Assembly: GCF_036365525.1 (NCBI RefSeq)
Contig: NC_090404.1
Coordinates: 8,432,001-8,496,000 of the forward strand
DNA: 64,000 nt
Direction: 5' to 3'
Source of the DNA: Heterodontus francisci
Taxonomy: Eukaryota
How positions within the stretch are numbered: position 1 is the stretch's first letter; each line of letters opens with the position of its first letter. The notes beneath the pieces are model-generated. The model was given only the letters and a program-made list of their open reading frames with translations. It ran no database searches and was not told the DNA's origin. This document shows, in pieces, positions 20,055 through 62,470 of the stretch. A program made the position numbers and the translations under genes.

Positions 20055-20748
20055 AATTCTAAGTGGTTTTTATGAAGTAGATCACTCGTAACCGTTTCCA
20101 TGAGCAGAAAATTCGATAACCCAAGCACCCCGATTTAAGAGAAATGATAAAAAGACAAGCCAAGATGAGATTTATTTATTAAACAGCAATTTGTTAAAAT
20201 CTGGAATGCACTGCCTAAAAGGGCGGCGGAGGAAGATTCAACCGTAACTTTCAAAAGGGGATTGTGTATAATCTGAAAAGGAAAGTAGAGCCGGGCTTTG
20301 TGGAAAACGCGAGAAGTGAAAAATGAATTGGAGAACTCCTTCAAACGGGCATATGTACGATAGGCTGAATGGCCTCATTCCGTGCTCTCAGGTTCTATCA
20401 TTCTAGTCCCCTCATGTCCATCACACTCTGTTGCCAACCAAACGAGCAGTGCGCATGTGCAGGATAGCCTGAGACCTCTGGAGATTCAACCCTTCGCTAT
20501 TTCCTCCCATCAGTTCCGAGTGCAGCTGAGTGTCGCCGCACACTTCGCTCAATTTTGAGTCTGCGGGATCTCCGCCCACAGCTTCCGTTTGTTGCTCTCG
20601 TTCTGACCCGAATGTCTAATTGGACAGATTGCTACCGCGGGTCCATTCTTGTCATTGGTTGTATCAGCAGTGCAGTGGGACCGGGATCTGTATTTCTCCT
20701 TCGACAGAGAATTTCCTGCACTGCAGAGTTACAGATTCAGGAAGTATC

Positions 20749-21252
20749 ATGTGGAACCGTCTATCACCGCTTCTCATCATTATATCACTTCTCAGTAAGT
20801 ATTTCCTTCTCAGTAAAAGTCCGCTCTCCCCCTGACTGCTGTAATCCAGATGTTATTGTTGGTAAAATAATAGTGATGGTGGTGTTGAGGGTTATGTTGA
20901 TCAATATGAGGCAAATTCTGATTGCTGATATTACTATTTTTCTGTTAGAATGGAGCCACCAAGACACAGTGGAACAGTCGGTTGCTGAAAGAACGGTTGA
21001 AAAGGGATCGAAAGTCACACTAACTTGCACCTTGAAAACAAGCGATTCGAACTCTTATGTGTACTGGTACAGTCAGCGCCCCGGGCAGCCTCCACACAAC
21101 ATACTTCGTCTTATTGGAGGGAATCTATACAGGAACACCGGCATCACTGTTCGGTTCTCGGCTACGTTTAATAAAACTGCCAAGATTACCGAGATAACGG
21201 TCGGCAACACCCTGATCTCCGACAGCGCCGTGTATTTCTGTGCCATGAGCCC
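20749..21252 (+). CDS. TCR Valpha/delta gene (leader 20749-20794, V exon 20949-21252), apparently functional
   Basis: MWNRLSPLLIIISLL|KWSHQDTVEQ...TLTC...YWYSQRPGQPP...DSAVYFCAMSP. RSS: CACACTG 21253-21259, 24-bp spacer, ACAAAAACC 21284-21292. Confidence 0.9.
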
Positions 21253-21316
21253 CACACTGCTGCAGATATATAGCAGATCCCGTACAAAAACCCACACTTA
21301 GAGTTCCAGTTAGCGC

Positions 21317-25079: not shown

Positions 25080-27660
25080 ATAATAGAACATAGAACATAG
25101 AACATTACAGCGCAGTACAGGCCCTTCAGCCCTCGATGTTGCGCCGACCTGTGAAACCATCTGACCTACACTATTCCATTTTCATCCATATGTCTATCCA
25201 ATGACCACTTAAATGCCCTTAAAGTTGGCGAGTCTACTACTGTTGCAGGCAGGGCGTTCCACGCCCCTACTACTCTCTGTGTAAAGAAACTACCTCTGAC
25301 ATCTGTCCTATATCTATCACCCCTCAACTTAAAGCTATGTCCCCTCGTGTTTGCCATCACCATCCGAGGAAAAAGGCTCTCACTATCCACCCTGTCCAAC
25401 CCTCTGATTATCTTATATGTCTCTATTAAGTCACCTCCCCTCCTCCTTCTCTCCAACGAAAACAACCTCAAGTCCCTCAGCCTTTCCTCGTAAGACCTTC
25501 CCTCCATACCAGGCAACATCCTAGGAAATCTCCTCTGCACCTTTTCCAAAGCTTCCACATCCTTCCTATAATGCGGTGAGCAGAACTGCACGCAATACTC
25601 CAGGTGCGGCCGCACCAGAGTTCTGTACAGCTGCAGCATGACCTCGTGGCTCCGAAACTCGATCCCCCTACTAATAAAAGCTAACACACCATATGCCTTC
25701 TTAACGGCTCTATTAAACTGGGTGGCAACTTTCAGGGATTTATGTACCTGGACACCAAGATCTCTCTGCTCATCTACCCTACCAAGAATCTTCCCATTAG
25801 CCCAGTATTCTGCAATCCTGTTACTCCTTCCGAAGTGAATCACCTCACACTTTTCCGCATTAAACTCCATTTGCCATCTCGCAGCCCAGCTCTGCAGCCT
25901 ATCTATGTCCCTCTGTAACCTACAACATCCTTCGGCACTATCCACAACTCCACCGACCTTCGTGTCATCCGCAAATTTACTAACCCACCCTTCTACACCC
26001 TCATCCAGGTCATTTATAAAAATGACAAACAGCAGTGGCCCCAAAACAGATCCTTGCGGTACACCACTAGAAACTATTCTCCAGGATGAACATTTACCAT
26101 CAACCACCACCCTCTGTCTTCTTTCAGCTAGCCAATTTCTGATCCAAAACACTAATTCACCTTCAATCCCATACTTCTGTATTTTCTGCAATAGCCTATC
26201 GTGGGGAATTTTAGCAAACGCCTTACTGAAATCCATATAGACCACATCCACGGCTTTACCCTCATCCACCTGTTTGGTCACCTTGTCAAAAAACGCAATA
26301 AGGTTTGTTAGGCACGACCTACCCTTCACAAAACCGTGCTGACTATCTCTAATGAACTTATTCTTTTCAAGATGATTATAAATCCTATCTCTTATAACCT
26401 TTTCCAACATTTTACCCACAACCGAAGTAAGGCTCACAGGTCTATAATTACCAGGGCTGTCTCGACTCCCCTTCTTGAACAAGGGGACAACATTTGCTAT
26501 CCTCCAGTGTTCTGGCACTATTCCTGTCGACAATGACGACATAAAAATCAAGGACAAAGGCTCTGCAATCTCCTCCCTGGCTTCCCAGAGAATCCTAGGA
26601 TAAATCCCATCTGGCCCAGGGGACTTATCTATTTTCACACTTTCCAAAATTGCTAACACCTCCTCCTTGTGAACCTCAATCCCATTTAGCCTAGTCGTCT
26701 GTATCTCAGTATTCTCCTCGACAACATTTTCTTTCTCCACTGTAAATACTGACGAAAAATATTCATTTAACACTTCCCCTATCTCCTCCGATTCCACACA
26801 CAACTTCCCACTACTATCCTTGATTGGCCCTAACCTATCTCTAGTCATTCTTTTATTCCTGATATACCTATAGAAAGCCTTCGGGTTTTCTTTGATCCTA
26901 TCCGCCAATGACTTCTCGTGTCCTCTCCTTGCTCTTCTTATCTCTCCCTTTAGATCCTTCCTGGCTAGCTTGTAACTCTCAAGCGCCCTAACTGAGCCTT
27001 CACATCTCATCCTAACATAAGCCTTCTTCTTCCTCTTGACAAGCTCTTCAACTTCTTTAGTAAACCACGGCTCCCTCGCTCGACAACTTCCTCCCTGCCT
27101 GACAGGTACATACTTATCAAGGACATGCAGTAGCTGCTCCTTGAATAAGCTCGACATTTCGATTGTGCCCATCCCCTGCAGTTTCCTTCCCCATCCTACG
27201 CATCCTAAATCTTGCCTAATCGCATCATAATTTCCTTTCCCCCAGCTATAATTCTTGCCCTGCGGTATATGCCTGTCCCTGCCCATCGCTAAGGTAACCC
27301 TAACCGAATTGTGATCACTATCACCAAAGTGCTCACCAACTTCTAAATCTAACACCTGGCCGGGTTCATTACCCAGTACCAAATCCAATGTGGCATCGCC
27401 CCTGGTTGGCCTGTCTACATACTGTGTCAGAAAACCCTCCTGCACACACTGGACAAAAACAGACCCATCTAAAGTACTCGAACTATAGTATTTCCAGTCA
27501 ATATTTGGAAAGTTAAAGTCCCCCATAACCACGACCGTGTTACTCTCGCTCCTGTCAAGAATCATCTTTGCTATCCTTTCCTCTACATCTCTGGAACTAT
27601 TTGGAGGTCTATAGAAAACTCCCAACAGGGTGACCTCTCCTCTCCTGTTTCTAACGTCGG
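25080..27660 (-). mobile_element. Young CR1 LINE (5'-truncated ORF2, 819 aa open)
   Basis: Endonuclease tail (VMGDFN, SDHN) plus a complete RT; (tagaaca)n tail. Confidence 0.95.
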
Positions 27661-33349: not shown

Positions 33350-36300
33350 TGGTTAAAAAAAACTAATAAAGAGAGAAAAGATTGATTATGAGAGTAAATT
33401 GGCAAGAACTATAAAAACAAACAGTAAGAGCTTCTATGGGTATATTAAAAGGAAGAGAGTAGCTAAAGTGAGTGTGGAATCCTCAGAGGATGAGACTTGG
33501 GAATTAATAACAGGGAATAGGGAAATGACAGACAATTTAAACCAATATTTTGCATAAGTCTTCACGGTGGAGGACACTATAAACATCCCAACAATAATAG
33601 ATGAACAAGGTGTAAGTGGGAGGGAGGAACTTGGAACAATCTCTATCATGAGGGAAAAGGTGATGGACAAACTGATGGAACTAAAAGCAGACAAGTCGCC
33701 TGGACCTGATGGCCTGCATCCAAGGGTTTTAAAAGAAGTGGCTGCAGAGATCGTGGAGGCATTGGTCATAATATACCAAAACTCACTGGATTCCAGTAGT
33801 GTACCCAGCGGATTGGAAAACCACTAATGTGACACCACTACTCAAGAAAGGAGAGAGACAGAAAGCAGGGTACTATAGTCTAGTTAGCTTAACATCTGTC
33901 ATTGGGAAAATGCGAGAGTCCATTATTAAGGAAGAAATAGCAGGACATTTAGAAACATATAATGCAATCAAACTGAGTCAACATGTTTTATGAAAGGGAA
34001 ATCATGTTTGACAAATTTGTTAGAGTTCTTTGAGGATATAACAAACAGAGTGGATAAAGGTGAACCAGTAGATGGTGAGTATTTGGATTTTCAGATTTTG
34101 ATGAGGTACCACATAAAAGGTGATTACAAAAAATAGGAGCTCCGGGTTTTGGGGGTAATGTGTTGGCATGGATTGAGGATTGGCTAACATACAGAAGGCA
34201 GAGAGTCGGGATCAATGGGCCTTTTCAGGTTGGAAAGCTGTAACTAGTGGGGTGCCACAAGGATCGGTCCTAGGGCATCAACTATTTACTATCTATATTA
34301 ATGACTTGGAGTAAGGGACAGAGTGTAGAGTATCCAAATTTGCTGATGATACAAATATAAGTGGGAAGGCAAGTTGTGATGAGGACACAAAGAATCTACA
34401 AAGGGATATAGATAGGTTAAGTGAGTGGGCAAAAACTTGGCAGATGGAGTTCAATGTGGGAAAGTGTGGGGTCATCCACTTTGGTAGGAAGAATAAAAAG
34501 GCAGATTATTATTTAGATGGAGAAAGACTACAAAAAAAGTGCTGTACAGAGGGGTCTGCGTGTTCTTGTGCACGAAACACAAAGGTTAGCATGCAGGTGC
34601 AGAAGGTAATCAGGAAGGCAAATGGGATTTTGGCTTTTATTGCTAGGGGGTTAGAGGTTAAAAGCAGGGAAGTCTTATTACATATGTACAGGGTGTTGTT
34701 GAAGCCACACCTGGAGGATTGCGCACAGTTTTGGTCCCCGTATTTAAAGAAGGATATACTAGCATTGGAGGCAGTTCAGAAAAGATTCACTGGGCTGATT
34801 CCTGGGATGAAGTGGTTGTCTTATCAAGAACGGCTAAAAAGGTTAGACCTCTATTCATTGGAATTTAGAAGAGTGAGAGGTGATCTTATTGAAACATGTA
34901 AGGAGCAAGAGGGTAACTAGAGAAAGGATTGGCCCACTCAAGGACAAAGGAGGAAAGTTATGCGTGGAGTCAGAGAAAATGGGTGAGATTCTAAACGAGT
35001 ACTTTGCATCGGTATTCACCGAGGAGAGGGACATGACAGATGTTGAGGTTAGGGACAGATGTTTGATTACTCTAGGTCAAGTCGGCATAAGGAGGGAGGA
35101 AGTGTTGGGTATTCTAAAAGGCATTAAGGTGGACAAGTCCCCAGGTCCGGATGGGATCTATCCCAGGTTACTGTGGGAAGCGAGAGAGGAAATTGTTGGG
35201 GCCTTAACAGATATCTTTGCAACATCCTTAAACACGGGTGAGGTCCCGGAGGACTGGAGAATTGCTAATGTTGTCCCCTTGCTTAAGAAGGGTAGCAGGG
35301 AAAATCCAGGTAATTACAGACCGGTGAGCCTGACGTCAGTGGTAGGGAAGCTGCTGGAGAAGATACTGAGGGATAGGATCGATTCCCATCTGGAAGAAAA
35401 TGGGCTTATCAGTGATAGGCAACATGGTTTTGTGCAGGGAAGGTCATGTCTTACCAACTTAATAGAATTCTTTGAGGAAGTGACAAAGTTGATTGATGAG
35501 GGAAGGGCTGTAGATGTCATATACATGGACTTCAGTAAGGCGTTTGATAAGGTTCCCCATGGTAGGCTGATGGAGAAAGTGAAGGTGCATGGGGTCCAAG
35601 GTGTAATAGCTAGATGGATAAAGAACTGGCTGGGCAACAGGAGACAGAGAGTAGCAGTGGAAGGGAGTTTCTCAAAATGGAGACGTGTGACCAGTGGTGT
35701 TCCACAGGGATCCGTGCTGGGACCACTGTTGTTTGTGATATACATAAATGATTTGGAGGAAAGTATAGGTGGTCTGATTAGCAAGTTTGCAGACGTCACT
35801 AAGATTGGTGGAGTAGCAGATAGTGAAGGGTCTGTCAGAGAATACAGCAGAATATAGATAGACTGCAGAAATGGGCAGAGAAATGGCAGATGGAGTTCAA
35901 TCAGGGCAAATGCGAGGTGATGCATTTTGGAAGATCCAATTCAAGAGTGAACTATGCAGTAAATGGAAAAGTCCTAGGGAACATTGATGTACAGAGAGAA
36001 TTGGGTGTTCAGGTCCATTGTTCCCTGAAGGTGGCAACGCAGGTCAATAGAGTGGTCAAGAAGGCATACGGCATGCTTTCCTTCATCGGACGGGGTATTG
36101 AGTACAAGAGTTGGCAGGTCATGTTACAGTTGTATAGGACTTTGGTTCAGCCACATTTGGAATACTGCGTGCAGTTCTGGTCGCCACATTACCAAAAGGA
36201 TGTGGATGCTTTGGAGAGGGTGCAGAGGAGGTTCACCAGGATGTTGCCTGGTATGGAGGGCGCTAGATATGAAGAGAGGTTGAGTAGATTAGGATTATTT

Positions 36301-37110
36301 TCATTAGAAAGACGGAGGTTGAGGGGGGACCTGATTGAGGTGTACAAAATCATGAGAGGTATAGACAGGGTGGATAGCAAGAAGCTTTTTCCCAGAGTGG
36401 GGGATTCAATTACAAGGGGACACGAGTTCAAAGTGAAAGGGGAAAAGTTTAGGGGGGATATGCGTGGAAAGTTCTTTACACAGAGGGTGGTGGGTGCATG
36501 GAACGCATTACCAGCGGAGGTGGTAGACGCAGGCACGATAGCGTCTTTTAAGATGTATCTAGACAGATACATGAATGGGCAGGAAGTAAAGAGATACAGA
36601 CCCTTAGAAAATAGGCGACAGGTTTAGATAGAGGGTTTGGATCGGCGTAGGCTTGGGGTGCCGAAGGGCCTGTTCCTGTGCTGTAATTTTCTTTGTTCTT
36701 TGTTCTCTTTATGTAAGATTCTAAGGGGGCTCGACAGGGTAGATTTTGAGAATATGTTTCCACTCGTGGGGGAATCTCGAACTAGTGGACATAGTTACAC
36801 AATAAGGGGTCAAGCATTTAAAACTGCGATGCGAATGAATTTCTTCTCTCAATGGGGTGGTGAATTTCTGGAATTCTCTACCTCAAAGAGTTGTGGAAGC
36901 GAGGTCACTAATTGTATTTTAGGAGGAGGTAGATAAGGAGGTAAGGAGGAGGAGTTTTGAAGTCTCGGGGAGTCGAGGGTTATGCGGAGCAGGCCCGAAA
37001 GAGGAGTTGAGGCCTGATAGAGATCAGCCATGATCTTATTGAATGGTGGGACAGGCTCGAGGGGCAAATAGCCTACTCCTGCTCCTACTTCGTGTGTTCT
37101 TGTGCTCTTG
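33350..37110 (+). mobile_element. CR1 LINE interrupted by a younger nested CR1 (34903-36710)
   Basis: Two sets of RT motifs. ATGTAAG TSD at 34896-34902 and 36711-36717 splits the host at ...DLIETC|KILRGLDRV. Confidence 0.9.
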
Positions 37111-44509: not shown

Positions 44510-44940
44510 CACTCTGCAAGAAAATCTCCATCGACACTGCCCCATGAAACACTCCGAGACCACGTAAAATATGGATTAGATACAGAGTAAAGCTCACTCT
44601 ACAACGTCCGATCAAACACTCCCAGGGCAGTAGAGCATGGGTGAAATACAGAAGAAAACTCACTCTACACTGTCTGATCAAAGATTCCCACAGCTGATAC
44701 ATTTCGGTTAGGTACAGAGTAAAGCTTCTTTTACACTTTCCCATCAATCACTTCCAGGGTGAGTGCAGCATGTGTTGGATACAGATTGAAATTTCTTCCT
44801 ATACTGTCCTATCAAACATCTCCAGATCAAATACAGCATGGCTTAGATAAAAAAGTAAAGATCCCTCTATATTGTCCCGTCAAATATTACCAAAGAAGGT
44901 ACTGTTTGGGTCAGATGCAGGTTAAAGCTCACTCTATCTC
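44510..44940 (-). repeat. Diverged ~64-bp minisatellite (reverse complement of the 50600-51320 unit)
   Basis: gatacagagtaaagct...catcaaacactcccagg units. Confidence 0.7.
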
Positions 44941-45004: not shown

Positions 45005-45320
45005 GTTTAGTTTAGTTTAGAGATACAGCACTGAAACAGGCCCTTCGGCCCACCGAGTCTGTGCCGACCATCAACCACCCATTTATACTAATCCTACACT
45101 AATCCCATATTCCTATCACATCCCCACCTGTCCCTATATATTTCCCTACCACCTACTTATACTAGGGGCAATTTATAATGGCCAATTAACCTATCAACCT
45201 GCAAGTCTTTGGCATGTGGGAGGAAACCGGAGCACCCGGAGGAAACCCACGCAGACACAGGGAGAACTTGCAAACTCCGCACAGGCAGTACCCAGAATCG
45301 AACCCGGGTCCCTGGAGCTC
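45005..45320 (-). mobile_element. tRNA-derived SINE (HE1-like)
   Basis: Near-identical to the 22509 copy in reverse; a partial + copy lies at 46430-46640. Confidence 0.85.
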
Positions 45321-47999
45321 TGGAAGAGCAATTCACTCAGTTCCATTCCCTCGCCTTCTCCCCATAACCCTGCACGTTCTTCCTTTTCATACAACTGTCA
45401 ATTCCCTTTTGAAAGTTTCAGTTGAACCTGCCTCCACCACACTCTCAGGCAGTGCATTCCACACCTCAACCACTCGCTGTTGAAAATTTGCTTCCTCGTG
45501 TCACTTTTACTTCTCTTACCAATTGCCTTCAATCTGAGCCCTCTCGTTCTCGATCCTTTCACGAGTGGGAACAGTTTGTCTCTATCTATTCTGTTCAGGC
45601 TCCTCATGATTTTGCATACCTCTATCAAATCTATAATATTCCATCAAATATTCTCAGAGTAGATTCTATTTGGGTCAGATACAAAATAAAGCTCGCTCTA
45701 CATTGTGCCAATGTTCCCAAAGCAGCTGCAGCATGGATTATATACATAAGGACGTGTTACAACGAGCACTTACATGTCAACTGCTGCAGCTGTTAAATAA
45801 AACTCAGAGCTTCCTTTAATCTACCCCACAAAATACTCCAATGTCAGGAACATCATCGCGGCTGCACGGAATAGATCTGTTATCCTGTTCCATTAAATAC
45901 TCCAATATCAGGGAGAATACGATTACATACAACCTAAAGGTACTCTTTCCTATTCAGCAATGCCTTATTGCAGCTCCAGAATGTTTTTGAACCAATAACA
46001 GCATATTGTCAATTGATAAAAGTTTGAACCGTGAGAGTCCAAGTATTGACCTGCCGAACATTCAGGTAGTGGTTCAGTGGATAAAATAATGGTCATAAAT
46101 GGAAACCGAAATGAGTAAACGTGGTAACGTCTCGACTGAAGCCAGGGGGAATGTCATCCTTAAAGCTGCTTCATTTTTATATGAGCCAAAATGGTTCACG
46201 AATATTCTTAATTTATATCAGGTTTATTGCTAGAATCTTTAAAAGGAAGAGGGAATGCAGAGGTGTTTTGGACTTCCAATTCTCATTATGTCACTTGAAG
46301 AGTGTTTCCAGTCAAAGTCTATTTCCAAATCCTCGGATACCACGGTCAGATGATATCTAAGTGCGATGTGCGTGCAATCATTTACAAGTACCTCACACAA
46401 TATTAGCTCTCTGGGCCGTGCTTATCTAGCCAAAAGACTTGCAGGTTCATAGGTAAATTGGCCATTATAAATTGTCACTAGTATAGGTAGGTGGTAGGGA
46501 AATATAGGGACAGGTGGGGATGTTTGGTAGGAATATGGGATTAGTGTAGGATTAGTATAAATGGGTGGTTGATGTTCGGCACAGACTCGATGGGCCGAAG
46601 GGCCTGTTTCAGTGCTGTATCTCTAATCTAATCTAATCTAAAATATACATTACAAACAATTTTAACTTAAGTGCCTCACACGCATAGTCATGAGCACTTT
46701 GAAGGCGAGTGTCTTGACCAAGCGCAGTCTGATGAAGTACAGGGACAAACCCATTTCACTGAAACCTGCCCCACGTGAAATAGAACAGTGAGAACCAGAA
46801 AGCAAACTTTACCAAATTTCGCATTTACTACGTATCAACGCAAAGCGTTATTTCAAAAGACTTAGCAGAATAGCCTACATTTCAATGCATGTGCCTCTGT
46901 TTCTGTATGTCTTTGTGAGTGTGTTTCTGCTACCTGTGTATGTGTCAGTGTGATGTGGGTGCCGGTTATTTCTGCGTGTGCATCTCTGTGTGTCTGTGAG
47001 GATATGTGCATCATTTATGTGTGTCTGTTTGTGTTTGCATGTGTGTGTTTTCTGCCTAAATGCATTTGTTCTCTTATATATATATGGAATATATTATAAA
47101 TCCATATATTCTGCTTGAGTTTACAGATAGATAATTCGCAAAACATGTTCCAATATGTTCTTGGCGAGAGTCGGCGAAGAGGAAATGAGGCTGTTTAAAC
47201 TCTTTAGTATCCTCAGATTATTACAACCCAGAAGGCACAATAAATAAAAACAGATCGCTGAAAGAAAGAGATTTCATTTGTAAACAGTGGCACTACGACG
47301 CAGGTGCAGATATTTTCTGGGTTATTTATTTGTGGCGACATTTTCAAAAGTTTCTAAAATTACGTGTTTATTTGGTTTAGAAGCAAATTCCTCCCACTAT
47401 CGCTAACATACAACAATCAGAGTAATCGCCTCTCAGTCTCTATGAAAGAACATTATGAAGAAGTTAATGGATGTTTCACCCTGCTGAATATTTCATCTGT
47501 AATTTTAACTGTGCTACTTTAGAAAGCATCTTTCACAGTCTCATGATGTCCCAAAGCGCATTACATCCATACGGAAAATGTAATCCATTAGAAATTGCAC
47601 TGTAGGGTAACACAGCAGACAATAATGTGCATAACAGGATCCAGCAAACAGCAATGGGATATTTAACAGATATTCTGATTGTAAGTAGGGTTCAGGGCTC
47701 AATATTGGCCCACGACGCCAGGGAGAATTTCCAAGTTCTTTCAAAGAATGCCATTGGATATTTTGTGTCCATCTGGAAGGGCAGACAAGGCCTCGGTTTA
47801 ACCTCTCGACAGGAAAATGAACCCATGACAGTGCAGTTTTTCCTGAAATCTCAGCCTAGATTTTATGCTGAAACCTTTGGATTTGGGTTGGGATAACGTT
47901 CTTTTTGGAATATAGTGCAAAAGGAAATTCTACAACTGCAGCATGTAGCGAGCACACAGATTCTCCAGTTTGTAGCTCAACAGGTTAAAGAGCTGTTTT

Positions 48000-48151
48000 T
48001 ACCCGTGAGGCGAAATGTTCACTCCGAAAATTTATGAATCTTATATCGAAATCAACACCTGAACGCAGTCACAGTTTGTCGCATCGTCTCAGTTTGTGAA
48101 TCGAAGGCTCTGTTCCCAGGATCTTCTTTGGACAGTTCCACATCTCACTTC
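48000..48151 (-). pseudogene. Decayed TCR alpha/delta-type connecting-peptide/TM exon
   Basis: tttag|GA AGT: SEMWNCPKKILGTEPSIHKL, frameshift, TMRQTVTAFR...TFRL. Spacing matches KVNMMSLTVLGLR, and the T of TFRL lies 14 codons after the R, as in TCR alpha/delta TMs. Confidence 0.5.
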
Positions 48152-49057
48152 CTAAACGGAAATGCATAGAACATTCCTGTGATTCAAACTCCCTTAGAAA
48201 TCAATGAAAACATCAACATTCACAAGGGCTGCTGCGTCACCTGGATGTTGTACAATGTTTTTGTCTCTGGTTCCGGGATCCAGTTGATAATCTAGGTTGA
48301 CACATAGGTGCAGAATGATGCCAGGAGTTATCTCGTCCCTGCTGTTACCTTGTGGTAAGATTAAACTAGCCTCTTCAGGTCGAGGGTAAGAGATATCTCG
48401 AGGTGTCGGGAATTGCCCTGCTTTGCTGACCAACATTGACACCTCACTCAATGCAATGAAGACATGTTGACGGATTATGCAAGTAACTCACTATTTGTGG
48501 ATCCTGATGTGTGAAATACTGACTGCAAAAATTGGCTTCAAAACAACAGTGACTTCATTTGAAAAGTTAACACGCTGTGTAAACATTTCATCATTCCCTT
48601 TATAGCCCTTTGGTTGTTAGGTCAGATACTAAAATGATTAGCGCCTTTCATGCCGACCCAAAGTGCTTCATAAACATTTTTGTACAGTCACCAATGATCA
48701 GATCATCTGCGTTGTAATGATTTGGAGAAAGGTATTCCCCAGGGCACTCGGGAGAACTCCCAGGAGTTCTTTGGACTAGTGGTGGCATCATTTCTGTGTA
48801 ACTGAGAGAACAGCTGGAGCGTCGGTTTAATGTCTCGTCCGACACGGCCGACAACGGAGCACTCTTTCAATGATGTACTGAGATCTTCAGCCTGGGTTAT
48901 GTGCTCAAATCACTGGAGTGGGCCTCGAATTTACAAACATCTGGCCGACAGGCAACCAAGCCACTCACTGAGCCAGGATGGTACCTGCTCGCTGTTTTTA
49001 GAACACTTCGATGGATCATGGGATCAATAAATTGTTGAAACGCAGCTTTTCCATAAA

Positions 49058-49349
49058 CTGTTTGCAGGACTATCTCGTCTGGCACCGTGGCGTGTTCAAC
49101 TTTGCAATCGATCACACCCCCATGTCTCCATCGATATATCGGTAGAAAAACAGCCGGTGTGTATCTCCCATGTACGGCGGGTTGAATTCAACTTCCTGAC
49201 TGCGGTGGACGAAGTCTTCATGGATATGTTAATTTCTGGTGGATAGAAATCCGTCACCAATCAAACTGCGGCTGCGTCTCCTCCCACACTCAGAGCTCCA
49301 TTCTGAAGGCGGAAGAGGTGCGTTTTTTGCCTGGAAAGTTTGGTGAGCT
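49058..49349 (-). pseudogene. Decayed TCR Cdelta-like constant exon
   Basis: cacag| phase-1 acceptor; ...GGDAAAV*LVTDFYPPEINISM...TGCFST, frameshift, VIDCKVEH...VLQT. First Cys is now TGA (49261-49263). No C-strand Trp, as in TCR Calpha/Cdelta. Confidence 0.72.
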
Positions 49350-50599
49350 CTGTGATTTGAATGAAATAATGTCAATATCTAGGACAATATTAAAATAGAA
49401 TGAAATGATCCTTCTAATTCTAATGCTCAACAAAATCGCTCCTTCATTTCCTCATCCCATTTCAGTGTCGCAGTTGATGTGAATGAATTGTTCTCGTTCA
49501 GTTTTACTCTGATCATTCTGGAATTTATTTTCAATAAGGAACAGAATATGTTTAGTAATGAATTTGCAGGCATTGCGTGAATTTCGAGAGTAAAATATTA
49601 AAGAGGTCTTATGTTACGAAGTCGTGGAGGTTCTGTTACTGCGCAGAAGCTGCCTGGGTGTTTCTTTAATTAATAAAAATGTCTTTTACAGTTACGATTG
49701 AGGAAATTGGCTAAGCTCAAGAGCCCTGCTTTCGGAGACACGCGATGTTACAGCCCATCGGTAGTTAATGATATCTAACCCCGACTAGACCTTGAACTAT
49801 TTAAAGTAGTCCAGTCCTAAACCCATCATGTGAAATACACCCTGAGAATAGCCGTTTAAATTCCATAGGCGTGCTCAGAAACATGCAGTGTTTACAAGGG
49901 TGTGGGTCGAGAACAGGACAAATTTTGAATTAATGAAGTGTCATTTTATTTACAGAAATTCATATATCTTTCTGAAAATTTCCATCTCCTATGACTTTAA
50001 TATTATAAAGTTCCATGTTCATTTAATTAAAAGGTAATATTTCACAAGGTACCAGGCAGAAAAAGATTAACAATTAGCATGAACTAATTTTACCATAATG
50101 TAGTAAATATTAGCAGGAGATTAACTTGGAATATAATACCAGCATTAATTTATGAAACAAAATGAGCTCCCACAATGGCGTTACGTTCTGCCCAGCATTC
50201 CCAGTGTGGAGGGAGATTTATCTTAAATGAGCTGTGACTGTTTTATTCCGTAAAGTTCAAACAACATAAATTTGTATCTAACAAATCAGATGCAAGAGCT
50301 CGAGCCAGGTATCTAAAAATAAACCATGTTATTGCTCCAAAGAAACAACTGATCGAGTTTACTCTTCTTTCTAAATAAAATCTCTCTAATTCTTATTGAA
50401 TTGATAATGAATAAATATTTTGAGCAGCCGATCATTATTGAATGCAATTGGCTTAATCTTGAGAGTGCTTTCCGAATAAACAATTTCAGGAAGTGACCAT
50501 AACGCTCCAGACAGCAACGCCTGTTCAGATCTGAACGTCAGCTGGAAGATATTTTGACGATTCAATTAGACGGTGTGAAGATTTGCTCTCTATCTCACC

Positions 50600-51320
50600 A
50601 GTGCTGTACCTTCCCGGCAGATGTTGAAACTGAAAGTGCAGAGGCAGTCTTACTCCATATCTAACCCGAGTTGGCATGTGTTTGACGGTAAAGTGGAAAG
50701 GAAGCTTTAATTTGTATCTGATCTGTGCTGCACCTGTCCTGGGAGTGTTTGATGGGACCGTGGAGAGGGAGCTTTACTCTGTTTTTGACACGTTTTTGTT
50801 TTTCATTTTTAGGAGGGAGAGGGGATCACGTCGGGCGCTGTGCAATGAATTCAGAACTGAATCACAGTGTCGAGGGAGCTTTACTCGATATCTAACCCTT
50901 GAAAGTGAGGGACTGCTTGAACGCCAGGTTATTCACTACCTCCATGTCGCATTTATTGGTGGCCTATAACAGGTAGTGGCAATGAGAATAGAGGGGTGCT
51001 TTACTCCGTATCTAACCCCATGATTTTTCTTTTTTTCCTAACCCCGTGCTGTACCTGTCCTGGGAGTGTTTGATGGGGGACAGCGTAGAAGGAGCTTTAC
51101 CCTGTATCGAACCCCGTGCTGTACCTGTTCTGGGAGTGTTTGATGGGGACAGTGTCGAGGGAGCTTTACTCTGAATCTAACCCCGTGCTGTACCTGTCCT
51201 GGGAGTGTTTGATGGGACAGTGTGGAGGGAGCTTTACTCTGTATCTACCCCATGCTGTATTTGCCCTGGGAGTGTGTGATGGGACAGTTTAGAGGCAGAT
51301 TTATTCTGTATCTAGCCATT
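50600..51320 (+). repeat. ~64-bp minisatellite
   Basis: ccccgtgctgtacctgtcctgggagtgtttgatgggacagtgtrgagggagctttactctgtatctaa units. Confidence 0.85.
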
Positions 51321-53814
51321 TTTTTTCATTTTTCTTTTTTTCTTTATCAGCCAGGGTTCCTGCTCCTGATCTCTATCTTACCCTTGCTAAATCTGATCTG
51401 AGAGTGATTGGCCAGGCAGCGTTCAAGGAGCATTTATCTGCATCTAAACAATAAACTGCGAGTGCTCGAGCCAGTTGTATAAGAATAAATCTCTCCAAAG
51501 CCCAGATCTAACAACGCAAACTCATTTATATTAAAGTTCTTTCTAATAAAGTGTGTGCGCGGGTTGTAATGATTTATTAATTTTCAAACGTTTCGAGTAA
51601 CAGATAATTATGGAATGAGAGTGACCTGATCTTTAGCTTAATTTCAGACTAAATAGTTTCAGGGAGTTATTGATTTAGTGACGGGTTTGACCAACTCCAG
51701 AAAGCAGCGTCAGTTCTGATCTGGTTGGAGGCTGCAGATACTTCGAAAATCCAAATAATGTCGAACTCGCGCTCCAAATAGCTTATGTTTGAAACCGTTA
51801 TTTTGTTCAATTATTTCTTTTAAAAAAGGAAGCAGGTAGGTACCAAGTCGGGTGAGATGCAGTTATTGCACTGGGTCACAAGGCTTATCGTCGCTGAATT
51901 GCACTTCAGCGAAAACATTAAAGAGATACCATCAGACTACAATGAGTCATTATTTACAAAAAGCTTCAAGCTTCTGCAACAGTATCCAATTGACTCATTT
52001 ACGTCAAGTTCCTTTCCTATTTCATTTATATCAAGTCACAAAAATAGAGCTGATTAGGAGGCTCAATATTATGAAGTGTTTCCTTCTATTAAGTCGGGAA
52101 GAACTAATTCTGTTGCATCGTATGGGATCATAAAATCTTACAGCATGGAAGGAAGGCATTCGACCCCTCGTTCCTGTCCGTGTTTCGAAATAGCGGTCCA
52201 ATTTAGTCCCACACCTCAACATTTTGCTCATCATCCTGCAAATTAACCTTCATTGTGAAAAAGTCCTCATTTCCACTCAAGTCATTTGGCCAATGATTTT
52301 AACCCTTTAACCTTTGGTTACCGACGGAGGAATCAGTTTCTCCCGAATTGCTCAATCAAACCCTGTCATAATTTTAATTGGTCTCCCAATAATCTTCACT
52401 GCTCTAAGGAAAACAATCCCAGCTTCTCCGATATCTCTACGTATCTGACCCCTCTCATCCCTGGTTGTGATCCGGCTAAACATTCATTGTCCCTTCTTCA
52501 AGGCCTTTCCAACCTTCCAAAAGTGCGGTTTCCAAAAATCCACTCAACAATAGTTCATCTGAAACCTGTACAGTGATTTCTAAAGGTTCCGCATGACTTC
52601 CTTGCTTTTTGTATTCACTGACTGAATTTACAAAGCCTAGTATCCCAGATAACTGCATTATCGACTTATCCTGCCACCTTCCAAGATTTCCCAATATGCA
52701 GCGCCAGGTCCCTCTGCTTTTATAACGACTTCAAAATTGTACTATTTAGATTCTACTGCCTCTCCATGTTGAAGCTCCTGAAGTGCAGCGCTTCACATTG
52801 ATAGAATCATAGACTAATACAGACAGAATGAGGTGATTCGTCCAATTATTCCGGTTAACTTGCACTTGCCATGTGTTTGCCCATTTCATCAGTCTGTTTA
52901 TGTCCTCCTTGTGGGAAACGGATTATTAACTGACTGGGAGGGAGGAGGAAACTCATGAGAGACCCGTTCAGTACAATAGGATACAGCACAAATCATAATG
53001 CATTTAAGAGCATGTCTCTTCCTCCAATTCTGAGAAGGAAAGAGATAGACTCGAGACATTCCCGATTCGTCTAAAGGTGGAATCTTAGAAACTAGGATAA
53101 CGAAAGTTCCCTATTGACTTCTGTGCACTAAATCATTCAGTGCATATTTTCAAGTTTATATATTGCAAATGTCCTTTATTTATGGGGACAAAGAAGATTT
53201 AGATTCCAACGCTGGAATTTTAAAGAGTTTATAAAGGAATTTGGGAAGCATAATTTCCCCGATTGGTGAGTTGGTAAGGAGACGGCACTGATTGAAAATC
53301 TGTACCAAAGGAATGAGGGAGTGGGAAATCTGTTTTCCTACACAGTGGGTTGTTAGCACTTGGAATGTCCTATCAGAGAATAAAAAACAATCAGCAATCA
53401 GAATCCATAATAGCGCGAGAAAATGGAACATTTGAAAAGAAGATTTGAAATTGAAAGTAGAACGAGATTGGTGGAGAAATCTTTCACAGGCTTGATGAGC
53501 CAATTTGCCCTCTTCTGTGCTATAAATTTGTATTATTGTATAATTCTGGATCATGCTTTGTAAATATGATTGGATTTGTTTTAAGCATAAGACAACTGGT
53601 AGATCTAGCGGATGTAGTTATGTGACTAGGAGAACTAAACCCGCTGCAATTCAGATAAGTGTATCACCTGAAAATAACAACTTGCAATTTCATAGCCACT
53701 TTGCCGTAGTAAACACTCAGAAGAACATTCCCTGCAGTCAATTTTCAAGTTGTTTGGTTAGATATACGCTAGGGTTACAGAATCTAAATTATGAAATTGG
53801 TCATCCTTTCCCAA

Positions 53815-54185
53815 CGACACCGTCTCCACCGGCCCCCACCCCACCTCCACCACCCACCCACAGCACCCCCCACCCCTCCCCCCCACCCCACCCCAGTCAA
53901 CCCGCACACTCTGCGGCCAGCTCGCCTGTGAAGAACTCAACACCAACAGCTCCGGAGCCTACGGCTGTTTGGCGATGGACTACACCCCCGAAATCACCAC
54001 CATTTCCTGGAAGAAAAATAAAGAACCGATCAGTACTAGATTCAAGACTTACCCGTCAGTGCCGACCAAGAAGGGAACCTACACCCGGAGCTGCCAGTTA
54101 ACCATCACCGAGTCAGAGGTGGGAAGCAGCAAAATCTACTGCGAGGTTCGACGCGGAGAGTCGCTCTGGATCAATAAACTGCCAG
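53815..54185 (+). pseudogene. IGHM: IgM heavy chain Cmu1 exon, disabled
   Basis: (A)TPSPP[C-rich ~75-bp frameshifting insert]TLCG..CEE...YGCLAMDY...SWKK...[39 protein letters not shown]. Acceptor reads AA instead of AG (53813-53814); donor G|GTTAGT is intact. Confidence 0.88.
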
Positions 54186-54917
54186 GTTAGTGTCGTATAC
54201 AAGGGGTAAAGTGAAAAACAGATCAGTTATATTCAACCTGTACAGAACTTTGCTTCGGTCAGCCTGAGAGTACTACACATAATCCTGGTCTCCATTTCAC
54301 ACTTAGTGCGCTGTGTTTAGTTTTGGTTTTCATACTGCAAGAATGATACAGAAGCACTGGAGAAGGTACAAAAAGATTTACAAGGGCAATACCAGAACTG
54401 AACGATTATAAATGTCAAAAAGTAATTAAAAGGCTGTTGCTCTATTCTTCAGGAAAGAGAAGGTTGCGGGTTGACCAAATACTGGTTTTTAACATTATGA
54501 ATGCGTTTAATAGGTTATGTGGAGAGAAAATATTTCTGCAAGAGAGGAAGCCCAACTCTAGGGGTTATAAGCATAATAAATTCACGAATAAATGCAATGA
54601 AGAATGCAGGAGAAGTTTCTTCAGCCAGCGTGTTTAGAATGTGGAACTTGCGACCACATAGAGCGGTTGAGACAAATGACATAGATGCCCTTTAAGAGGA
54701 ATCGAGATGAGTATATGAGGGAGAAAGGAAAGGATATTGATAGCGGGAGACAAAGCATAGTGGGAAGAGTTCATGTGGAGCAATAACTTCGACATTGATC
54801 TATTGGATCAAATTATTTGTTTCTATGTTTTAAATTCTATGTAATAATATTTGAAACAACGGTTGACAGTTATTTTGGATTGCAACAAAAATACATATAT
54901 ATTGTATTTTCTTGAAG

Positions 54918-55229
54918 ATCGTGTGTTACATCATCCAATTGTTATCCTCACCCAGAGTTCCAGTGAAGAAATCACAAGCAGCAGATTTGCAACTGTCTTG
55001 TGTTCAATCATCGATTTCCATCCAGAGTCAATAACCGTGAGTTGGTTGAAGGATGGACAACCCATGGATTCGGGCTTCATCACCTTTCCCGCCTGTGAAG
55101 CGAACGCGAACTTCTCGACGACCAGTCGGCTGACAGTCCCCGCTGGGGAATGGTTCACCAACACGGTCTATACCTGCCAGGTCTATCATCAAGTGGTCAC
55201 CCAAAGCCGAAACATCACCGGATCTCCGG
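54918..55229 (+). CDS. IGHM: IgM Cmu2 exon, open reading frame with intact splice sites
   Basis: [54 protein letters not shown]...YTCQVYHQ...NITGSP; gaag| acceptor and G|GTAAGA donor; 312 nt. Confidence 0.92.
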
Positions 55230-55914
55230 GTAAGAGACACAAACCGAGGAAGCTCCGGATAATTCTGAGTAAAGTCAGGACTTTGATTGAAATTAGTGTA
55301 AAGCACAGAATTATTTCGAACTTTTAATCGTGTAGCTTGTGTTTCGTTCCAAAGTAAAGGAGAAGAAAGACTTTCCTTTTTTCAGCGCGTCTAGACTCCT
55401 CTCAGAGATTCCATCCACAAGGAAGAAGGTGAGCGGTGAGATTGAAGCAATAAGTCAGAGGTTGTGGCTATTTCCTGTGTTTGTGAAAGGGACAATTCGT
55501 CCTATTAAATTATGTAATGGATTACTCTGATTCCACTAACGGAACCCTCTGGAACCATAGGTAATGCATTTAAGGGGAAGCTAGATAAGTAGATGAGGTA
55601 GAAAGGAATAGAAGGAGATGAAGCAAGGTGGGATGAAATTCGTGTGCAGCATAAACATCAGCACAGATTAGTTGGGCCGAATGCCCTGTTCCTGTGCTGT
55701 AAACTCCATGTAATGTTCCATTCTAATCCTTTAAGTCCTCAGTGAAAAGGATTGCATCCGCCTCTGCTCCGGGCTGGAAAACAGGACGGGTCCCAGAGGC
55801 GTAAAGGAAAACCTTTAAAATCCAGCGCAAAGCCCATTCCTCTCACATCGAACCAGTGCTCTCATTGCACATGGTTATTGGTAGGCTGTGAAAATCTGAA
55901 CAATAGTAACATTT

Positions 55915-56960
55915 CACACACAAACGCAAAAACACATATAAAACACTTGCATATATATGGAGACACAAACACATAAACACATACATTAACAAAAACACAC
56001 ATATATAAACACATTAAGAAGCACAAACACGCACAACATTAACTGATTTACACACAAACGCACGCATTAGTCCGCTCACACAGGCACACAAGTAACCACG
56101 GGTGTGAACGCATACATAAATACAGTGAAAAACATCCACTAAAACAGTCATACAGACATAAGCACAACACACATCAATCCACTGACCCTCATACTCACAC
56201 ACACACACACACACACACACGCACCCCGACAAACACGCACCCTGACACATATAAATGCAACACACTAATATCCTCAAATACACACATGGACACGCAGACA
56301 CGTTCGTAAACACAAACATGAACGGAAACAGACACACTGAAAAACGGACACATGAACACATCCACACAAACGTAAACACACAGTGACATATATCAACAAA
56401 CTCACTCTCTCTCACACACACACAAACAGAATGTTAAATATCTCCATTAACACGATCATATACACTCATTAACACTATCAACACTCATTCTCATGTTACC
56501 TCATAAACAAATGGCCACACAAAGACAAATATCAACGAACGACACAACAGGCATGGACGCCCAAACGCACTCATAAACAAACACACTCACACACACATGG
56601 ACCCACACATACACAAACATACACGTTAACACACACATAAAAGGACACGCAAGCACACACATAAACAAACACACGGACAGACACACATACAAACACATTA
56701 ACATCTTGGCATTTCTTCGTGAATGAAGATTTTAGGAAGGTTTCGCTCGCAGTTGCACGCCCGCTGGTGGCAAGTCAGGCCTAGCGTCGACCGCAACACA
56801 TAAACACTCAAGCACACACGTTAACACACACACCGAAAAAGGACTCATAGAGACACATTAACACACTCAAGGTCACACAAACACACACATTATCACACTC
56901 GCGCACATAAATGGATTCACAAACACAGAAAAATGCAAAACAGATAGAAATGCACACACT
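55915..56960. repeat. CA-rich low-complexity / decayed microsatellite tract
   Basis: (CA)n-like sequence over ~1 kb. Confidence 0.9.
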
Positions 56961-59549: not shown

Positions 59550-62470
59550 CCAGGGTCCTACAAGACAAGGGGCGGCACTGGACCTAATCTTCGGGAATGA
59601 AGCCGGACAAGTGGTGGAAGTCTCAGTGGGGGGGGGGGGGGGGCATTTCGGGGATAGTGACCATAACTCTGTAAGATTTAAGGTAGTTATGGAAAAGGAC
59701 ATAGAGGGACCGGAAATAAAGGTACTGAGTTGGGGGAAGGCAGATTTCAATATGAGTCATCGAGAGAGATGCAGCACTGAAACAGGCCCTTTGGCCGACC
59801 GAGTCTGTGCTGACCATCAACCACCCATTTATACTAATCCTACATTAATCCTATATTCCCTACCACATATCACCTTCCCTCAATTCTCCTACCACCTACC
59901 TACACTAGGGGCAATTTACAATGGCCAATTTAGCTATCAACCTGCAAGTCTTTGGCTGTGGGCGGAAACAAGAGCACCCGACGGAAACCCACGCAGTCAC
60001 AGGGAGAATTTGAAAACTCCACACAGGCAGTACCCAGAACCGAACGTGGGTCGCTAAAGCAGTGATGCTAGCCACTGCGCCACTGTGCCAAAATGATTCA
60101 ACAAGATCTGGTCAAAGTGGACTGGGATCAGCTACTTAGAGGAAAGTCGCAATCAGATCAGTGGGAGTCATTCAAAAATGAAATAGTGAGAGTTCAGGGC
60201 CATCATGCTCGTGTAAACGTGAAAGGTAGGACTAACAAGCCCAGGGAACCTGGATGTCAAGCGATAGAGAGGATTGGATAACGAATAAAAAAGGAGACTT
60301 ATGGCAGATTCACAGGGCTGAAAACAATGGAGGCCCTAGAGGAGTATAGAAAGTGCAGGCGGTACTTTAATAAGTAATTAGGAGAGCGAAGGGGGGCATG
60401 AAAAACACTGCAGGCAAGATAAAGGAAAATCCCAAGGCCTTTCATAAGTATATCAAGGGCAAGAGGATCAGCAGGGAATGACGAGGGCCCATTAGGGACC
60501 AAAGTGGCAATCTCTGTGTGGAGCTGGAGGACGTAGGTGAGGTTTTAAATTATTACTTTTCATCTGTGTGCACTATGGAGAAGGATGATATAGCTGTAGA
60601 GATCAAGGAGGGGGATTGTGATAGACTTGAATAAATTAGCATTGAAAGAGAGGAGGTATAGCGGTTTTAGCGGTCTTAAAAGTGGATAAATCCCCAACGC
60701 CCAGATGAGATGTATCCCAAACAAAAACAAGAACTGCTGGAATCACTCAGCAGGTCTGGCAGCATCTGTGGAAAGAGAAGCAGAGTTTACGTTTCGGGTC
60801 ACTGACCCGAAACGTTAACTCTGCTTCTCTTTCCACAGATGCTGCCAGACCTGCTGAGTGATTCCAGCATTTCTTGTTTTTGTTTCAGATTTCCAGCATC
60901 CGCAGTATTTTGCTTTTATTTGAGATGTATCCCAGGCTGTTGTGTGAGGCAAAGAAGGAGATTGCAGGGGCTCTGACACAAATTTTCAAATCCTCTCTGG
61001 CCACAGGAGAAGTGCCAGAGGACTGGAGGACAGCGAATGTGGTACCATTATTCAAGAAAGGTAGCAGGGATAACCAGGTAATTACAGGCCGGTTCGTCTA
61101 ACATCAGTGGTAGGGAAACTAATGGAAAAAATTCTGAGGGACAGGATTAATATCCACTTGGAGAGGCAGGGATTAATCAAGGATGGTCAGCGTGGCTTTG
61201 TCAAGGGGAGATCATGTCCAACAAATTTGATCGAATCTTTCGAGGAGGTGACTAGGTGTGTAGATGAGGGTAAAGCTATTGAAGTAGTCTACGTGGACTT
61301 TAGTAAGGCTTTTGATAAGAGCCCGCATGGTAGATTGGTCAGGAAGGTAACAGCCCATGGGATCCAGGCCAATTTGGCAAATTGGATCCAAAATGGGCTT
61401 TGTGGCAGGAGGCAGAGGGCGATTGTCCTGGGTTATTCTTGCGAGTGGAAGCCTGCGACCAGTGGTATACGCAGGGATCGGTGCTGGGACCCTTGCTCTT
61501 TTGTAGTGTACATTAATGATTTAGAAGCGAATATAGGAGGTATGATCAATGTGTTCGCAGATGACACGGAAATTTTTGGTGTTGTAAATAGTGAGGAGGA
61601 AAGCCTTAGATTACAGTATGATGTAGATGGGCTGGGAAAATGAGCAGAGCAGTGGCAAATGGAATTTAATCCTGAGAAGTGTGAGGTGATGCATTTTGAG
61701 AGGACTAACAAGGCAAGGGAATATACAATGGATGGTGGGGCCACTGGAAGTACAGAAGGTCAACGGGACCTTGGTGTACTTGTCCATAGATCACTGAAGG
61801 GAGAACCACAGGTAGATAAGATGGTTAGGAAGGCATATGGGATACTTGCCTTTATTAGCCGGGGCATAGAATATAAGCACAGGGAAGTTATGACGGAGCT
61901 ATATAAAACGCTAGTTCGGTCACAGTTGAAGTACTGTGTATATTTCTGGGCACCGCACTAGAGGATGGATATGATTGCACTGGAGAGGGTGCAGAGGAGA
62001 TTCACCAGGATGTTGCCTGGGCTGGAGCATTTCAGCTACGAAGGGAGACTGGATAGGCGAGGGTTGTGTTCCTTAGAGCAGAGAAGGCTGAGGGGGTACC
62101 TGATTGACATATACAAAATTATAAGGGGCATTGATAGGGTAGACAGGAAGAAACTGTGCCCCTTAACGGAGGTGTCAATAACCTGGAGGCATAGATTTAA
62201 TGGAAGGGATAGGAGGCTTAAGAGGGGATTTGAGGAAATAAAATTCACCCAGAGGGTGGTTGGAATCTGGAACGCACTGCCTGCCTGAAGAGTTTTTAGA
62301 GGCAGGAACCCTCACAACATTTAAGAAGTAATTAGATGAACACTTGAAACGCCATAACATAGAAGGCTACGGGCCAAATGCAGGAAAACGGGATTAGAAT
62401 AGAAAAATGCTTGATGGCCGGCATGAACACGATGGGCGGAAGGGCCTGTTACTGTGCTGTATAACTCAAT
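59550..62470 (+). mobile_element. Decayed CR1 LINE with a nested SINE (59765-60089, -) and a hairpin Penelope-derived element (60720-60920)
   Basis: GDSDHNSV and RT motifs; hairpin TSD TGAGATGTATCCCA at 60706-60719 and 60921-60934. Confidence 0.88.

Follow-up and report, generated by a model that had tools for sequence, protein, structure and literature searches.

Extra delta-related constant genes that stand apart from the ordinary T-cell-receptor (TCR) unit of diversity, joining and constant segments (D-J-C) have been described as TCR mu in marsupials and monotremes and as TCR delta 2 in birds (PMC2275272; PMC3457774; PMC5278385). In sharks, the mixing of the TCR delta locus, NAR-TCR and antibody heavy-chain clusters is an active question (PMC12227049), and the shark gene complex concerned also holds UrIg2, a non-rearranging gene made up of variable (V) and constant (C) parts, which was automatically annotated as a light chain (PMC12227049, section 7). 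Here, we analyzed a 64,000-nucleotide stretch of the horn shark Heterodontus francisci (NC_090404.1, positions 8,432,001 to 8,496,000; hereafter the window), the minus strand of which very probably carries a pseudogene, with three exons remaining from a delta-type TCR constant gene that falls in the alpha/delta class. The remnant is located in the V-gene region of the shark TCR alpha/delta-immunoglobulin heavy chain (IgH) complex. TCR mu and TCR delta 2 differ from it in being working genes with their own V, D and J segments arranged in clusters, and we liken the remnant to them by description, not by sequence.

The closest relative of the remnant was found by comparing a translated 49-residue piece of its first exon with 1.84 billion cluster representatives (phmmer, with neither word nor length filter). 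Eight proteins were obtained at E ≤ 0.001, and the only specific relative among them was P0003 (E 1.4e-8, 63% identity). The other seven matches (24-51% identity) comprised internal repeats, a repeat protein of bacterial appearance and generic immunoglobulin (Ig) proteins with several domains. P0003 and P0011 are isoforms X2 and X1, respectively, of a protein of the sawshark Pristiophorus japonicus that is labelled 'immunoglobulin lambda-1 light chain-like'. P0011, 327 residues long, begins with a leader and a V domain, which are followed by a J-like stretch (FGDGVRVIVES), one C1-set domain, a Cys peptide (EGRNCSEKV...), a transmembrane (TM) segment and a short tail, and its hydrophobic segment contains an Arg and a Lys with four residues between them. 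A word-indexed protein search with the 3' half of exon 1 returned no candidate. When P0011 was used as a tblastn query on the window, three matches were obtained that are collinear on one strand, two in exon 1 and one in the TM exon, and the C domain, connecting peptide and TM segment of the sawshark protein and of the remnant run in parallel at 53-75% identity. The first-pass annotation, which was made from the letters of the window, had proposed a decayed delta-type TCR constant gene hidden among V genes, and this proposal is borne out, as V exons lie on both sides of the remnant and on both strands, and its sole specific relative is a V-J-C-TM chain.

Exon 1 encodes the decayed C1-set constant domain. 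It is preceded by an AG (49351-49350), and two bases are left before the first full codon, corresponding to a phase 1 entry. From this acceptor the frame reads ...KTHLFRLQNGALSVGGDAAAV, then a TGA (49263-49261), then LVTDFYPPEINISMKTSS..., and from 49169 onward another frame gives GRYTPAVFLPIYRWRHGGVIDCKVEHATVPDEIVLQTVYGK. Residues 138-194 of P0011 were aligned to 49353-49183 with 53% identity, and residues 202-242 to 49169-49047 with 66% identity (tblastn, minus strand, whole 64-kb window), the two segments scoring 55-61 bits with a summed E of 1e-22, in agreement with the phase-1 C1-set exon on the minus strand (49349-49046, behind an AG) that had been claimed. At this exon, the generic C1-rich proteins P0007 and P0008 reached at most 25 bits and P0010 gave no match, indicating that the exon-1 match is specific to the lineage of P0011. 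The stop codon said to replace a Cys lies exactly at the first Cys of the homologue, and the second Cys is kept together with the ...CKVEH motif, both as the first-pass annotation had read them. The Trp of Ig C domains is lacking, as was also noticed; its position is occupied by Met, and since the same Met is present in the sawshark protein, it is a family trait and not a sign of decay. Two further lesions had gone unnoticed, a frameshift within the exon (13 nucleotides (nt) at 49182-49170) and a CT in place of GT at the donor (49045-49044), the probable position of which we set from where the alignment stops (...YGK) and from the need to join exon 2 in phase 1.

Exon 2 encodes the connecting peptide. 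In frame 1, the phase-1 continuation of exon 1, it gives GSEMWNCPKKI compared to GTEGRNCSEKV in P0011, and past approximately 48100 frame 3 gives FDSQTETMRQT compared to IDSRTGMMRHT. The exon is 93 nt long, yet its end phases of 1 and 2 demand a length of 1 mod 3, hence one frameshift must lie within it. What carries the assignment of exon 2 is that it lies between exons 1 and 3, on the matching strand and in the matching order, and that it has the conserved Cys and splice sites. A single exon holding both connecting peptide and TM segment had been proposed here; the Cys (NCPKK compared to NCSEK), the phase 1 entry and the AG and GT of that exon stand, but no TM segment is present in 48151-48059, and the string taken to show TM spacing had been read across two frames. 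The real TM exon, exon 3 (46766-46668), lies 1.3 kb outside the range that had been claimed. It translates as GFSEMGLSLYFIRLRLVKTLAFKVLMTMRVRH, and over 46766-46671 it is 75% identical to residues 271-302 of P0011 (32 residues, E 4e-8) with no stop. An Arg and a Lys spaced by four residues within the TM segment are a mark of the alpha/delta class of TCR chains, and both residues, with four residues between them, are kept in exon 3 as well as in the TM segment of P0011. The AG before exon 3 (46767-46766) misses the frame expected from the homologue by 2 nt, and an in-frame AG is found 7 nt further on (46760-46759). No fourth (tail) exon was found in the window, where the best score was 28 compared to a 99th percentile of 31. 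In all of these comparisons, the exons and in-frame pieces of the window were each searched separately, and no joined or spliced model was used. The coordinates are given in Table 1.

Table 1. Parts of the delta-type TCR constant remnant, its lesions, and neighboring elements in the 64-kb window.
Feature	Position in window	Strand	Basis or remark
Exon 1, C1-set constant domain, decayed	49046..49349	-	Phase-1 acceptor; tblastn of P0011
TGA stop in place of first domain Cys	49261..49263	-	Aligned to the Cys of ...AAAVCLVTDFYP... in P0011
Exon-1 frameshift	49170..49182	-	13 nt compared to 7 codons (residues 195-201) in P0011; tblastn segments in frames -2 and -3
Exon-1 donor, CT and not GT	49044..49045	-	Placed by end of alignment (...YGK) and phase-1 join (G/GA)
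Exon 2, connecting peptide with interchain Cys	48059..48151	-	AG 48153-48152 before, GT 48058-48057 after
Exon-2 frameshift	near 48100	-	Match to homologue changes frame; length misfit
Exon 3, TM exon	46668..46766	-	tblastn of P0011 residues 271-302; 33 codons, open
Interspersed repeat in intron 1, similar to short interspersed elements	48630..48990 (limits approximate)	-	Read from sequence
IgM relic, CH1-like open frame	53969..54190	+	4.6 kb from exon 1
IgM relic, CH2 open frame	54851..55327	+	Head to head with (diverging from) the TCR constant remnant

An ordinary C1-set domain combined with a TM segment of the alpha/delta type makes up the delta pattern. The C domain of P0011 scored 47.6 bits with the Pfam C1-set model, and no match to DUF1968, the domain typical of TCR alpha, was obtained at E up to 1. 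When the connecting peptide and TM segment of P0011 were compared with the PDB (E up to 10), 22 matches were obtained, ten of them TCR delta, eight TCR alpha, two further TCR and two unrelated; the six best were all TCR delta (E 0.0085-0.023), and none was named beta or gamma. Among solved structures, the TM segment of the homologue is thus closest to human TRDC, the ordinary TCR delta constant gene. The whole of P0011 aligned to human delta chains right through the TM segment, although lambda light chains scored nearly the same, and exon 3 by itself had a TCR alpha TM peptide as its sole PDB match (E 0.83). In the ESM Atlas, the look-alikes were constant regions of receptors with a single C1-set domain, namely TCR gamma C, pre-T-alpha and TCR alpha C; they point to no particular chain and may serve as a lead only. 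Of these, pre-T-alpha was rejected as an identity since P0011 carries a V domain. AlphaFold2, run on P0011 without an alignment, returned a mean predicted local distance difference test score of 41.5, and the TM helix alone was confident. Judged from P0011, a V-J exon would in the working state splice to exon 1, the Cys of the connecting peptide would pair the chain, as established for TCR alpha and delta chains, and by analogy with the same chains the Arg and Lys of the TM helix would dock it to CD3.

Several observations weigh against the assignment to a delta-type TCR gene. The signatures CLXXXFXP and CLXTD followed by F have been used for exon 1 of trdc and for trac, respectively (PMC10322711, Nature 2023); the window reads (stop)LVTDFYP, with the TGA at the Cys, and P0011 reads CLVTDFYP, so the string fits the trdc signature and the published trac signature alike, and the motif places the gene in the alpha/delta class without separating the two. 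Taken alone, the C domain is not specific to delta chains when compared by sequence with solved structures, and the signal of exon 1 by itself is only a weak Ig-like one; with the Pfam C1-set model, one of five pieces of the window matched (17.2 bits, E 0.0066), below the cut-off of 21. In the PDB, one piece gave five matches, all to lambda light chains (CL; best E 0.098), and another gave 213, the best 60 of which were IgG, IgM and IgA constant regions and one unnamed precursor, with none named TCR and with IgG CH3 and IgM C-mu-4 among the best; two further pieces of the window gave no match. High scores were also obtained with the C-TM part of P0011 for Ig chains of several domains and for UrIg2 of the nurse shark, where the stretch matched is C1 of UrIg2 (E 1.8e-13, PDB 9dmx). 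The score of exon 2 is weak, as 7 of 940 windows of the same size on both strands reach its best single-frame value and 2 of 940 its two-frame sum. Finally, the whole case rests on one homologue, a predicted gene model that could be chimeric.

The PDB matches of the window pieces (five of five to lambda CL for one piece, and IgG CH3 and IgM C-mu-4 among the best 60 of 213 for the other, where none was named TCR) would also be expected if the remnant were an antibody constant exon (for instance, a light-chain C or the final domain of IgM) and formed part of the IgM relic that lies close by (approximately 53969-55327, 4.6 kb away). This explanation is nevertheless highly improbable. The IgM relic is on the opposite strand and is 26-28% identical to the C domain of P0011; the connecting-peptide exon with its Cys and the TCR-type TM exon come next on the same strand and in the order of P0011; antibody-like multi-C proteins reached no more than 25 bits compared to 55-61 bits for P0011; and a Met occupies the position of the Trp kept in Ig domains. 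An Ig constant exon would show this strand-C Trp and an Ig-type continuation, whereas the Met of exon 1 is followed by a Cys peptide and a TCR-type TM segment. We accordingly rejected the last domain of the neighboring IgM relic because of its opposite strand, its identity of 26-28% and the kind of exons that come after exon 1. UrIg2 resembles P0011 in its automatic light-chain label and shares the chromosomal neighborhood of the remnant, but it has nine or more C domains and keeps its Trp 'pin' (PMC12227049), whereas in P0011 a single C domain is followed by a TM segment of the TCR type. A gene of the UrIg/UrIg2 kind would present a VJ exon, three or more C1 domains and the Trp pin, and we found one C exon in the window and one C domain in P0011; UrIg2 was therefore rejected on the number of domains and on its Trp, and it was absent among the best 60 PDB matches listed for the whole of P0011.

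The delta-type gene that we recognize here is dead. A working gene would be open in frame and have functional splice sites in every exon, whereas this one shows a TGA at the first Cys, a frameshift and a CT donor in exon 1, a frameshift in exon 2 and an exon-3 acceptor that is out of frame. Neither does its position correspond to the standard order, 5'-trdc-(traj)n-trac-3', with D-delta and J-delta upstream, as V genes lie downstream on the same strand. No J-like motif was found in the whole 64-kb window, and no recombination signal sequence (RSS) between 43 and 64 kb except that of the V gene at 42.7 kb. When 49350-53900 was scanned less strictly for FGxG, only three strings turned up, all within a low-complexity G/W-rich stretch (53843-53890) and with no heptamer, and tblastn of the window revealed no P0011-like V upstream of exon 1. 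The first-pass annotation had suggested either a relic second TCR constant lineage, which our searches somewhat favor (see below), or a mini-cluster, an idea that finds no support here, a J-like motif in the window, an RSS within 43-64 kb and a P0011-like V upstream all being absent. The stop, the frameshifts, the lost donor, the shifted acceptor and the lack of an own J, D or V together indicate that the gene is unable to make the chain, and the remnant would today have no role beyond marking an old duplication or rearrangement of the locus.

We also considered if parts of the remnant are still in use, for instance the intact TM exon, or all exons, spliced to transcripts of neighboring V genes, given that the TM exon is open for 33 codons and has an in-frame AG at 46760-46759. 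An open frame of 33 codons is, however, to be expected in about one of five random sequences (arithmetic estimate), exon 1 is interrupted by a stop and a frameshift and lacks a GT donor, and no contig of three runs (X1-X3) lay on any of the three exons or showed an exon joint. The runs come from one sample and are guessed to be RNA, given as assembled contigs, and silence of the locus is not proven by them, a point against the pseudogene reading; still, we regard continued use as very unlikely.

Having taken the remnant as a dead delta-type gene, we asked if it and P0011 belong to a delta-like lineage apart from ordinary TRDC. Ordinary TRDC shares with the remnant a single phase-1 C1-set exon, the CLXXXFXP signature and separate exons for connecting peptide and TM segment; the remnant differs from it in being dead and in having no close match to any shark TCR chain in the libraries searched. 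The sawshark protein shares with the remnant the Met in place of the C-strand Trp, the Cys of the connecting peptide, the Arg/Lys spacing of the TM segment and CLVTDFYP, at the Cys of which the remnant has its stop. The sawshark gene, known as a gene model only, is unbroken and includes a leader, a V and a J-like stretch, whereas the remnant lacks all three and is disabled by at least five lesions. When the C-TM part of P0011 was compared with a collection of 5.8 billion proteins, 316 candidates were obtained, and among proteins of 180-572 residues its own cluster alone passed E 0.001, which speaks against the remnant being copied from the ordinary delta gene. On balance, we therefore somewhat favor a delta-like lineage separate from ordinary TRDC that would have been kept in the sawshark and lost to decay in the horn shark.

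This step rests on absent matches in word- and length-filtered searches and not on a tree, which is a point against it. The remnant may instead be an old duplicate of the ordinary TRDC of the horn shark, with P0011 being the ordinary TCR delta chain of the sawshark and no separate lineage involved. The delta-type TM segment and the trdc signature would fit ordinary TRDC equally well, and protein annotation often omits TCR constant genes, so that blank searches may mean that shark delta chains were missing or filtered out. We take this explanation seriously while leaning the other way. C domains of elasmobranch Ig and TCR chains are stated to be generally more than 80% similar (PMC12227049, section 6), yet only the cluster of P0011 was matched, and horn shark proteins (P0001) are present in the collection of 5.8 billion proteins. 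Moreover, the filter-free search of the 1.84 billion representatives with the 49-residue piece returned no shark TCR chain among its matches, and the V domain of P0011 is merely 22-24% identical to the alpha/delta-type V genes of the window (tblastn). If the separate lineage is accepted, the remnant and P0011 may represent a fifth TCR-type constant lineage of elasmobranchs, delta-like but distinct from TRDC, its chain having a single C domain devoid of Trp and a TM segment that docks to CD3; its horn shark copies would once have been local constant genes beside NAR-TCR/V cassettes, a cluster-like stage of TCR delta, and would since have died, while the lineage is maybe alive in the sawshark. 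We put this forward tentatively, and do not expect all of it to hold.

The two sawshark isoforms are identical up to residue 270, and one DNA stretch, read one base apart, can encode both the final 26 residues of P0011 and residues 269-294 of P0003. P0003 (isoform X2) thus looks like the product of a transcript in which the TM exon is skipped and the frame shifted, and on these translations it is possibly a secreted or non-anchored form of the chain.

Repeats surround and interrupt the remnant. Contigs of runs X1-X3 pile up on 48856-48949 within the intron-1 repeat, but on no exon, as expected of a dispersed repeat. Directly behind the TM exon begins a 204-nt inverted repeat pair (46433-46636 and 45007-45210, 89% complementary), and a pile of contigs from each of the three runs covers 46600-46646, indicating that this inverted repeat is a high-copy dispersed repeat as well. 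Copies of a tandem repeat of approximately 68 nt (44522-44795 and 50701-51302) flank the remnant in inverted orientation; the inverted arms are 64-109 nt long and 73-80% complementary, and a tandem array of this unit lies at 50596-51445. Recombination between the inverted arms could have flipped the gene segment, and such an inversion might account for the head-to-head layout with the IgM relic. An Rfam search of 44-54 kb found nothing.

Within the window, V exons were located at approximately 42656 (+), 30965 (-), 23251 (-), 21221 (+), 7877 (-) and 1217 (-). An open frame of 248 codons (20555-21301, plus strand) spans one V exon (...YFCAMS...), and its nearest protein (77% identity) comes from a gene model of Heterodontus francisci in which two V domains are fused and a C domain is missing, a model that looks like an annotation artefact. 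A protein search from this frame, aimed at full V-J-C chains, gave only the V-V model and a V fragment. Judged from their translations, long frames resembling reverse transcriptases of the long interspersed element type are scattered among the V genes (12916-14870, 18679-19977, 25166-27625, 34880-36627 and 61107-61643). Behind the IgM CH2 exon, CA-rich simple repeats (56014-56931) give rise to spurious Cys/Val-rich open frames.

A literature search found no paper describing an extra delta-type constant gene in sharks; the main-text parts of PMC12227049 that were examined make no mention of extra TCR constant genes, and its supplementary coordinate table S1 may bear on that. A dead delta-type constant gene in the V region, beside an IgM relic, is direct evidence that more than one constant gene was once present here and that the region has been reshuffled. 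Should the remnant be only an old duplicate of TRDC, it would be an ordinary pseudogene of local interest. If, on the other hand, the lineage is separate from TRDC and working in the sawshark, a further receptor chain of cartilaginous fish would stand behind the 'lambda light chain-like' label, and the sawshark gene would be an undescribed antigen-receptor chain, comparable to TCR mu or TCR delta 2, in the oldest jawed vertebrates.

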